DNA of 64,000 nucleotides from Tubulanus polymorphus (GCF_964204645.1 NC_134031.1:5022001-5086000); one strand, 5' to 3'. Shown: positions 16,420 to 19,400, numbered from the stretch's first letter. The notes: generated from the sequence alone by a model not told the origin. Numbers and translations: made by a program.

Positions 16420-19400
16420 TTACCAAACTTGACACTTATGGACCGGATTCATCGGCGAGCCTGACGGACAGCTGTAAGCCTCGGAAAACTCTTTAGTATT
16501 CGATACCGAGCCTATAACTCTGAAAATGTCCATAAATCAAGATGTTTAGTTTCTATGCTCAGACGGTTGATGCATTTAGAACCATGGGAAATTATCGAGG
16601 CATTTCTTAATTGAAATACTCAATTGGATAAGATATGATACGTATACAATTAAATTAAAATACCGCAAAAGCTAAATGGTGAAATTAAATATATATGTTT
16701 TGCCGGGAAGAAGCAATTATTCTATGTTCATGGTCTAATGGAAGCTATAGGCATAGGACGACTAATTCCAGTCGATAGATAAGAAGCGAAATCCACCACG
16801 ATCTGAAGTTGGATATTCTACTCAAATTCTCTACCGAATCGTTAGATTTATATCGACGTTTTCTTAATAAAACTTGCTCCAGTTACATATGATGGCTATC
16901 TCCATAGACTGGCACGGAAAGAGCCACGATCACGCGAGCGTTTTTGGCCCGTGCCAAATTTGGCAACTGTTCACATAAACTTGCCAAATTGGCCCTTGCC
17001 TTGTTTGGCTCGACCAACAACGTCGGATCAGGCCGAGAGATGGACTTAAGCACGGGCCAAAATAATGATCGCGTTTGAATTGCAACTGGTTCCGGATGAT
17101 ACTCGCTTCGCTTTGTTTGAGTATTGTCCAGTATCGAGTGACACGAGCCAAATTTGGCTCTCGGGTCTGGTCCGTGCCATTTTGGTCAGGACAAAATCGT
17201 CTCCGTGTGATCGCGGCTTTCTCTGGCGATCGATGGAGGTAGCCTCGTCTCCTTTGCAGTCTCGACAATTAAATCTATTTGATTCAAGAGTGGTATGTGT
17301 CCTAGTCTTACCGTAAGCGTCCTGGGCTGTGTCGACCGGAACGTAATATGCCGACATAGCTCTCTGGTCGGGCCTTACCGCACCACACCTGCGCGTCATA
17401 GTAGATAATATTTAGGTAAAGAGAATCAAAATATGCATATAGAAGCTGAAGCTTAAAGAGCATTGATCACACGCGTAAAACTAAACGAAATTTGAAAAAC
17501 AAAGCATTCGGGATGGATATCCCTTTTCTAAGTGTACGTTTCTCGTGATTTCATAGCTCTCGAAACTTTCGAGTCGTTACCGATTATAAAAAGTGCAGCG
17601 AAAAGGAAAAGAAGGTTTACGCGACGCAGACGATAGAACGAAGACGATAATATACGGGGATTAATCAGACGAGATGCTGTGACTGCTACTGCATGCATGC
17701 GTGGTGCGCGTTAAAATTACCCCGCGATTGAAGTCGAAATAGAGAACTCTTGACAGAACGCCAAAATGTTGAAGACTTTCTCGGATTGCCATTTGGAATG
17801 AAAACTTAAAGCCGTGTTCAAACTTCGTTATTTAGAACGTTCCAATCTAAATCGTATCAAGCGTTCACACTTAGCGAGAATTCATTAAATTTGTTCCTTT
17901 CCATTAGAACAATCTAAAAGATCGTTCCAGGTCCGTTGAAGTTTCTAGGACGGACGTTTTCCTATGTAAGAATAGAAACCTTGCTTTCATTATCTGTAAG
18001 TCTATGGACTAAAAGCTTGTCCATGGTTAGTCACGGAGTTGTGTCCAGCTGTACCAGTGTCGAAAACGTGAATGAAAGCACAGAATTTGGTCCGTTCCAG
18101 GTATGGGCCAAAATAGAACGGACTATGACTAGCCATAGTGTGAACGCCTTAGTTCAGCTGGAAATGTAAGTGGCCCTTGGTACAGACCGAATTTGTTGGT
18201 ACGCCACGTGATTTCTATATTTCACTTCAACCATTTTAGGGGTAATTGGGAAGGATATCTATCACCGACATACCTGAATTCACCGGGGCTGTGTCGACCT
18301 GTACTAATTCTGTTAATATAAGCCTCGTCTCGTAAAGTGCCACACCAAACCTAATGTAAGAACCACGCACACGTTAGCACATCTACGTAACAACGACAGG
18401 CTAAAAAAATCGATACCTTGTTTCTCCTTTCTGCTTAGCTTAAAAGTTGACCTGGCCAGCCGCCTGATACCCTGGACTCGGTTTTATAGACTGGTATAAT
18501 CTTTAACCTGGGGGTTATCTCGACAGAAAATGAATTGAGTTAGCCCCAGTCTATAAAAGTGAGCCCTGTACTTTTTCTAAAATCGTGAGACATTTTACCA
18601 TTACAAAACCGGTAGCTAGAGAAATTAAATGAACTGATTACAAATTTTATTGTATTTCACAAAATGACCCGGCCGCTGCGGAAAAAAAGGTATCATTTTT
18701 GTTTAGCCTAAACATTACCACTACTCGCACTGGGCACACGGCGTTCAAATCGTACAATGTATATCGTATCAAGCTTAGGCAGCCAAGAACTTTTTACCGG
18801 ATTTTCCTAAGAAGTTTGTTTATTTTGAGCGATTGAACTCGGAATTTCAAGATCATAGAACCGGGTTCCCTCATTTTGCGTCATAAACCTCCCAGCCAAT
18901 TTTTGTTGCATATAGCCAGTACGAGTGTGATAAACCATAAAAGTCAAACAAACTAACAAACAACAAACAAACGAAAACGGATTTTCTTGTTAGTAAAACA
19001 TGAACAAATTACTAAGGTGTGTTCGTAACACAAAAACACGTGTCTACACTTCTATAATACCAGCATTCATCATGCTCAGCCTAGGTCTCCGAAACACTAT
19101 ATAATGATATTTTTCGATGCACACTATTTCGGTGGCCTATTCCGTATTTCAAAAATTTACAATTCCCCGAACGAACCAGCTGACAGGAATGTTTTGCAAG
19201 AATTAAATTCAGCAGATTGAATGAAATCCTAATCAAATCGTACACGTTTAGCAAGATGGGTAATCCGATGTAAAGTGAGTCATCATGTCAGCTGCGCGGT
19301 TCCGGAAGTGTATACGTATATAGATAGGGTTTGAAAACAGACGAAACAATGAACGTCAAAGGTATGGTGTATTTTATACGCTTAAAACCAGCATTATACA

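Follow-up and report, generated by a model that had tools for sequence, protein, structure and literature searches.

The window analysed here is a stretch of 64,000 nucleotides from the nemertean Tubulanus polymorphus (GCF_964204645.1, NC_134031.1:5022001-5086000), and positions are counted from its first letter. It contains a neprilysin-like M13 gene, which is encoded on the minus strand between about 31400 and 16420 and whose exons are matched exactly by the RefSeq 'neprilysin-like' isoforms X1-X5 (XP_074655286, 289-292). In Pfam searches, Peptidase_M13_N (PF05649) was found on the open reading frames at 29302-29568 (E 5e-12) and 26969-27247 (E 1e-9), and Peptidase_M13 (PF01431) gave two matches (E 7.7e-9 and 1.9e-8); single pieces of 25-51 residues, which are too short for this search, gave no match at E<=1 on their own. 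The HExxH zinc-binding motif is present as HEITHGFDD in the reading frames at 24110 and 21723, the third zinc ligand motif GENIADNGG (ExxxD) is encoded by the exon at about 19878-19813, and the last exon of the gene encodes the C-terminal C..W of M13 type. By these motifs and domains the gene product is a predicted peptidase, namely an M13 (neprilysin-type) zinc metallopeptidase. The HExxH exon is a tandem duplicate of a catalytic exon, as is the exon described below, and the Tubulanus RefSeq annotation carries only one version of it, ending GFDDEG. Isoform X5 (P0271) stops shortly past the HExxH exon with a short unrelated tail.

Elsewhere in the window, positions 1-15000 carry on the plus strand a RhoBTB-like gene in two tandem copies (Rho GTPase and BTB exons at about 470-5230 and again at 8665-14860); both lie upstream of the 3′-end of the peptidase gene. 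Tubulanus also has paralogous M13 genes. Two compact paralogues on one chromosome (C7:683667-685294 and C7:5147917-5149552) have equal bit scores exon by exon, which suggests a recent segmental duplication, with one copy about 62 kb past the end of the window.

The features with which this study is concerned lie in the 3′-part of the peptidase gene and are as follows.

19507..19614, minus strand: upstream constitutive exon, 108 nt (36 codons), ending ...FLNFAQ in phase 0; joined to exon A in an RNA-derived contig and present in all full-length RefSeq isoforms
18352..18713, no strand assigned: high-copy repeat directly upstream of the exon A acceptor; word depth 1,900-7,800 against about 30 for single-copy DNA (run X1); many contigs break here
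18274..18350, minus strand: exon A, 77 nt, the 'INRI..GRHSPG' version of the segment equivalent to neprilysin (NEP) 692-717; the version seen in RNA
17389..18273, minus strand: intron between exons A and B, 885 nt
17312..17388, minus strand: exon B, 77 nt, with the more basic version, 'ARPESY..GRHSPG'; intact and constrained
16838..17239, no strand assigned: element of moderate copy number within the intron that separates exon B from the last exon; depth 280-616 (run X1)
16420..16519, minus strand: last exon, coding portion; opens with the base that completes the codon equivalent to Arg717 and ends ...CQVW and stop

An earlier note, made from the DNA alone, had proposed that exons A and B are a mutually exclusive pair, and its description of them was borne out by the sequence: there are two 77-nt exons of phase 0/2 at these coordinates, and they encode the peptides that it gave. 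Exon A is preceded by ...ttag and followed by gtatgt, and exon B by ...gcag and gtaaga, so that both have AG acceptors and GT donors. Both start in phase 0 and end with two nucleotides (AG or CG), and the last exon opens with an 'a' at 16519; the codon is thus AGA or CGA and the residue is Arg with either exon, as the note had said. The upstream exon finishes in phase 0, two bases must precede the last exon, and neither 77 nor 154 is a multiple of three, so that by arithmetic only the inclusion of exactly one copy keeps the frame. Tandem homologous exons of equal length and phase, with the frame lost when both or neither is included, make a mutually exclusive architecture well supported as a prediction.

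Twelve of 25 aligned residues are invariant between A and B, and 46 of 77 nucleotides are identical, a similarity that on sequence grounds is more than chance. In alignments to a PDB structure of human neprilysin, both exons fall on chain residues 639-663, which correspond to NEP 692-716 (E 0.0013 for A and 0.25 for B). In both, column 20 is His and column 26 the completed Arg codon, the equivalents of NEP His711 and Arg717. Two further statements of the note hold as well: Gly-Arg stands in both exons where human NEP has Asp709-Val710, and B is the more basic, with a net charge of +5 against +1 when charges are counted within each exon. When a profile of A and B was searched against the 268-Mb genome, the two strong matches were A and B themselves, and weak single matches occurred in two paralogues. 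The paralogous genes have a single copy of the 77-nt exon each, including the two compact ones.

The high-copy repeat begins a few bases from the exon A acceptor, and the branch point and pyrimidine tract of exon A may therefore lie in transposon-derived sequence. The element at 16838-17239 has internal direct and inverted repeats (D1, I8, I12) and palindromic GCCAAATTTGGC cores.

Four public sequencing runs contain this DNA (X1-X4); all come from one study and none is recorded as RNA. Run X1 is genome-like, with an even depth of about 30. In run X4, a contig of 3319 nt with a depth of 53.7 joins 19872-19806, 19613-19505, 18348-18274 and 16519-15900 with GT..AG ends, and it must therefore derive from cDNA. 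Its joints place exon A between the upstream and the last exon (19507>18350, read as 18348/50<19505/07, and 18274>16519), and the last exon runs on as 3′-UTR to 15900 and for about 313 nt more. RefSeq isoforms X1-X4 likewise agree with exon A at 26 of 26 residues, and its splicing into transcripts is established. For exon B, the four runs showed neither 19507>17388 nor 17312>16519, it is carried by none of the five RefSeq isoforms of Tubulanus, and contig depth in run X4 is zero over 17240-18177. The direct joint of A to B (18274>17388) was likewise absent from the four runs. Run X4 is the sole RNA-like run, represents one sample and consists of contigs, which lose minor isoforms, so that the absence of B from it is weak evidence, though still absence. 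Short transcript-derived fragments from close nemertean relatives gave a best match of 67%. An unspliced contig through exon B in runs X2 and X3 (16942-17424) was considered as a sign of transcription and rejected, because intron cover is patchy, upstream exons are missing, there are no splice joints, and contig ends lie at GATC/GANTC sites (16340, 17423). Both runs look DNA-derived and Hi-C-like, and they were not counted as expression. The junctions that the earlier note had predicted were thus found for exon A, in one RNA-derived contig, and were not found for exon B.

The sequence of exon B argues that it is not decaying and is under purifying selection. In an alignment of 209 distinct homologue segments, nine columns are conserved at 0.78 or more (the equivalents of Trp693, Cys694, Arg698, Glu700, His711, Ser712, Pro713, Gly714 and Arg717), and B has the family residue at all nine; by our hypergeometric estimate, the probability that the 12 differences between A and B would miss all nine is about 6e-4. 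Between B and the single exon of the annelid Paralvinella, pS is 0.84 and pN 0.21 (Fisher 3e-6), and between B and copy 5 of the nemertean Lineus longissimus, pS is 0.85 and pN 0.30 (Fisher 4e-5); in both comparisons synonymous sites are saturated and replacement sites are not. Eighteen of 25 residues are common to B and the single exon of an annelid orthologue. The corresponding values for A against B are pS 0.60 and pN 0.34 (Fisher 0.053). Between A and Lineus copy 4 pN is 0.20, so that divergence is no greater in B than in A, the exon that is expressed. Pairwise pN/pS is an average over the entire path, and a silencing that occurred in the last few tens of millions of years would not show in it. 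The residues of B at NEP 704 and 705, and its Leu at 716, are rare in the family. The earlier note had named an exon that is both never spliced in and not conserved as the finding that would speak against the pair; exon B is conserved and constrained.

Orthologues were collected first by a representative search, for which the exon at 29302-29568 was the query, and then by two region searches. In a protein tree from which the 26-residue segment had been masked, nemerteans (support 98), annelids (99) and molluscs (98) each group together; because this tree follows the phyla, the sequences represent one orthologous gene. The copies of the 77-nt exon in these genes are as follows.

Lineus longissimus, nemertean (L037): five copies at 23786, 24109, 24548, 25598 and 26703, each 77 nt long with AG/GT sites, the cluster flanked by the FLNFAQ exon and the last exon
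Lingula anatina, brachiopod (L041): two copies, at 25860 and 26811; these are the sole difference between isoforms X1 and X2
Owenia fusiformis, early-branching annelid (L042): two copies, at 50234 (unannotated) and 53685
Paralvinella and Ridgeia, annelids: one copy each
Liolophura, Mytilus and Patella, molluscs: one copy each

Alternative use in Lineus and Lingula is taken from the RefSeq annotation (XP_064642717-729 and XP_023930211-214). Lineus isoforms X1, X2, X4 and X5 differ only in this segment and so represent four versions of it, X3 differs only in the HExxH exon, and X11 skips the cluster and acquires a frameshifted tail. The proposal of a mutually exclusive pair is therefore upheld in its architecture and by these isoforms of Lineus and Lingula, while a transcript with B alone was not found in Tubulanus; taken together, A and B form a genuine tandem pair of mutually exclusive type, which is probably functional.

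Several other observations were made on these genes. The second Lineus copy (L037:24109-24185), which is unannotated, is a recent duplicate of copy 1 (71 of 77 nt) with identical flanks and has Ser for the Trp693 equivalent; it may be either a young variant or one that is dying. The first Owenia copy (L042:50234-50310) has AG/GT sites and lies 3.4 kb upstream of the annotated copy. In a gene model from another species (P0115), the FLNFAQ exon is followed directly by the last exon without a 77-nt exon, probably an annotation error to which the same cluster of exons gave rise. Isoforms X1 and X2 of the chiton Liolophura sinensis (P0273 and P0153) differ only over alignment columns 273-335 in the N-terminal domain, where each has its own version of a homologous segment about 60 residues long, and this looks like another mutually exclusive exon pair elsewhere in the same gene. 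A 1.48-Mb ENA contig carries, next to a Helitron-like gene, an intronless copy of the orthologue encoding 777 residues with the 'ARPESY' type of segment (L039:2001-4334), which looks like a retrocopy made from spliced mRNA. This intronless gene groups with annelids, not nemerteans, and was set aside as evidence on Tubulanus.

Three flavours of the exon were assigned by signature. The HS-I/L-N type, which replaces the equivalents of Pro713-Gly714, comprises Lineus copies 1 and 2, Lingula copy 1 and Owenia copy 1, always stands first in its cluster and is missing from Tubulanus. To the 'INRI' type belong Tubulanus A, Lineus copy 4, Lingula copy 2 and the single mollusc exon, and to the 'ARPESY' type Tubulanus B, Lineus copy 5, Owenia copy 2 and the single exon of the other annelids. 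Tubulanus A resembles mollusc exons most (77%), and B that of Paralvinella (73%). In a tree of the 26 exon columns, the HS-I/L-N copies form a clade with support 95/95 across nemertean, brachiopod and annelid, and on this basis the cluster as such is older than the split between the three phyla, and ancient. A clade of the two Owenia copies was rejected (p-AU 0.003), and one of Tubulanus A and B was disfavoured (p-AU 0.03, and 0.10 in another run). As the exon trees have only these 26 columns and are mostly unresolved, the split between A and B cannot be dated from them. Order and types are common to Tubulanus and Lineus, and on this basis the split is judged to be at least as old as crown nemerteans. 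A single clade of all nemertean copies was not rejected (p-AU 0.11-0.13), and A and B are therefore not each claimed to be older than Nemertea.

The segment encoded by the duplicated exon aligns to residues 692-717 of human neprilysin (MME/CD10), an M13 enzyme with the same family fold and motifs, and includes its Trp693, His711, Gly714 and Arg717. In crystal structures of NEP these four residues make contacts with inhibitors, and the published structures place the segment on the primed side of the active site. Trp693 of NEP lines the S1′ pocket and swings toward S2′ with large P1′ groups, a movement that is possible because Gly714 has no side chain (PMC4908401). Arg717 binds the ligand backbone together with Asn542, and its carbonyl closes a deep S1′ sub-pocket (PMC4908401), and His711 stabilises the transition state (PMC7822871; PMC11700742). 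The differences between A and B fall at NEP 696, 697, 699, 701, 703-708, 715 and 716, so that beside Gly714 and Arg717 A and B have Glu and Arg, respectively, at 715 and Phe and Leu at 716. The published roles of Trp693, Gly714, Arg717 and His711 agree with the suggestion of the earlier note that A and B may form alternative linings of the primed-side pocket. Asp709, crucial in human NEP according to published work, is replaced by Gly in both Tubulanus exons and by Gly, Ala or Ser in most invertebrate homologues.

The reading that is favoured, with fair though incomplete confidence, is that A and B are the two surviving members of an old tandem cluster of mutually exclusive exons in the lophotrochozoan neprilysin-like orthologue, of which each transcript takes one copy and by which the walls of the pocket are varied. 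Each transcript would join the FLNFAQ exon to the last exon through one 77-nt copy, and whichever copy is taken would supply the fixed catalytic scaffold, that is, the equivalents of Trp693, His711, Ser-Pro-Gly714 and Arg717. The residues round this scaffold and their charge would differ, and with them the walls of the S1′/S2′ pockets, leaving the chemistry untouched; presumably the two forms would then prefer different peptides. A would be the default form in Tubulanus, and B may be used in a tissue, stage or condition outside the single RNA sample. Use of exon B in Tubulanus is, on the whole, probable but unproven. As for how the copies exclude each other, the intron between them, at 885 nt, rules out steric exclusion, and owing to the frame incompatibility two copies cannot coexist productively. 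An inverted-repeat scan for docking/selector RNA pairing gave nothing above chance, only short imperfect complements. One candidate pairs 14 nt at 86% complementarity between 17379-17392, at the exon B acceptor, and 17695-17708, 302 nt upstream, and this is within chance expectation; 3 kb of sequence should contain many perfect 8-bp cores by chance.

Three other explanations have to be weighed against this one. Exon B could be a relic, such that the cluster functioned in the nemertean ancestor and B has lately ceased to be spliced in the Tubulanus lineage and has not yet decayed. Its absence from every spliced contig and RefSeq isoform would be expected in that case, the pyrimidine tract of its acceptor is interrupted by purines, and its rare residues at three positions include the usually aromatic 716. 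Copies have also been lost elsewhere, since Tubulanus is without the HS-I/L-N type and the molluscs and two annelids are down to one copy. However, the frame, both splice sites, the length and the invariant residues of B are all intact, and replacement change in B is far below synonymous change, although this measure, as an average over the whole path, is blind to a recent silencing. A relic is therefore possible but considered unlikely.

If instead exon B were a regulatory 'poison' exon, included only together with A or in unproductive transcripts and so truncating the enzyme, the 154 nt of A and B would indeed shift the frame, and the skipped form X11 of Lineus with its frameshifted tail indicates that unproductive forms of this region get made. 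Such an exon, however, would have no need to retain Trp, His, Ser-Pro-Gly and Arg or to keep pN far below pS, the equivalent copies of Lineus and Lingula are annotated singly and in frame, and the joint of A to B that it calls for is the one missing from the runs; it is accordingly held to be very improbable. That the similarity of A and B arises by chance, or that one of them is an artefact of assembly or haplotype, is suggested only by their short length. With 46 of 77 nucleotides shared, they are not a collapsed or duplicated haplotype, a single-copy contig of run X1 covers 16942-18451 at a depth of about 30, and the same tandem arrangement occurs in three other genomes, so that the probability of this explanation is negligible. 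The favoured reading thus remains that of a surviving pair from an old exclusive cluster.

A wider reconstruction can be put forward only tentatively and with more doubt than confidence. The lophotrochozoan ancestor may have had at least two or three exclusive exon types (HS-I/L-N together with 'INRI' and 'ARPESY') for the wall carrying His711 and Arg717. In combination with the HExxH pair, these might give combinatorial active sites (2x2 in Tubulanus and up to 2x5 in Lineus), a small-scale, Dscam-like diversification of specificity that some phyla would have kept for more than 500 million years and that molluscs and most annelids would have reduced to a single exon.

Mutually exclusive clusters that arose by tandem exon duplication are well known from PKM exons 9/10, arthropod Dscam1, 14-3-3zeta and the exon pairs of voltage-gated channels. 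The cluster described here resembles them in its adjacent homologous exons of equal length and phase, in the choice of one of N by a length not divisible by three, in the conservation of the copies across species and in variation round a fixed core. It differs from them in that the varied part is the exon for the catalytic His and Arg of a zinc peptidase, and in that the second copy is known in Tubulanus from sequence alone. Full-text literature searches turned up no report of mutually exclusive exons in M13 peptidases. The Lineus and Lingula orthologues have the exon at the same position and with the same length and phase as Tubulanus, and their isoforms differ only here. They differ from Tubulanus in having, among their five and two copies, an HS-I-N type without the equivalents of Pro713-Gly714, a type that Tubulanus does not have, and in that alternative use is annotated in them whereas exon B of Tubulanus is unannotated. 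The HExxH exon pair of the same gene follows the same principle, but it carries zinc ligands rather than the His711/Arg717 wall. The alternative isoforms of Lineus and Lingula are already listed in RefSeq; exon B, Lineus copy 2 and Owenia copy 1 lack annotation.

Enzymes of the neprilysin family switch peptide signals off. Their specificity within M13 is usually held to diversify by gene duplication, and invertebrates often have ten to thirty M13 genes. In the gene described here, a single locus appears to vary the wall of the S1′/S2′ pockets by exon choice, with the catalytic His and Arg fixed, and this device is common to nemerteans, a brachiopod and an early-branching annelid. The annotation is corrected for three unannotated exons, namely exon B of Tubulanus, one further copy in Lineus, which brings the number there to five, and one in Owenia, which brings it to two. 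Should the B form be made, the A/B pair, Lineus copies 1-5 and the Lingula pair would constitute a natural mutagenesis series for the substrate preference of M13 peptidases, and this series would include the position of Gly714, which permits the movement of Trp693 in drug-bound human NEP.
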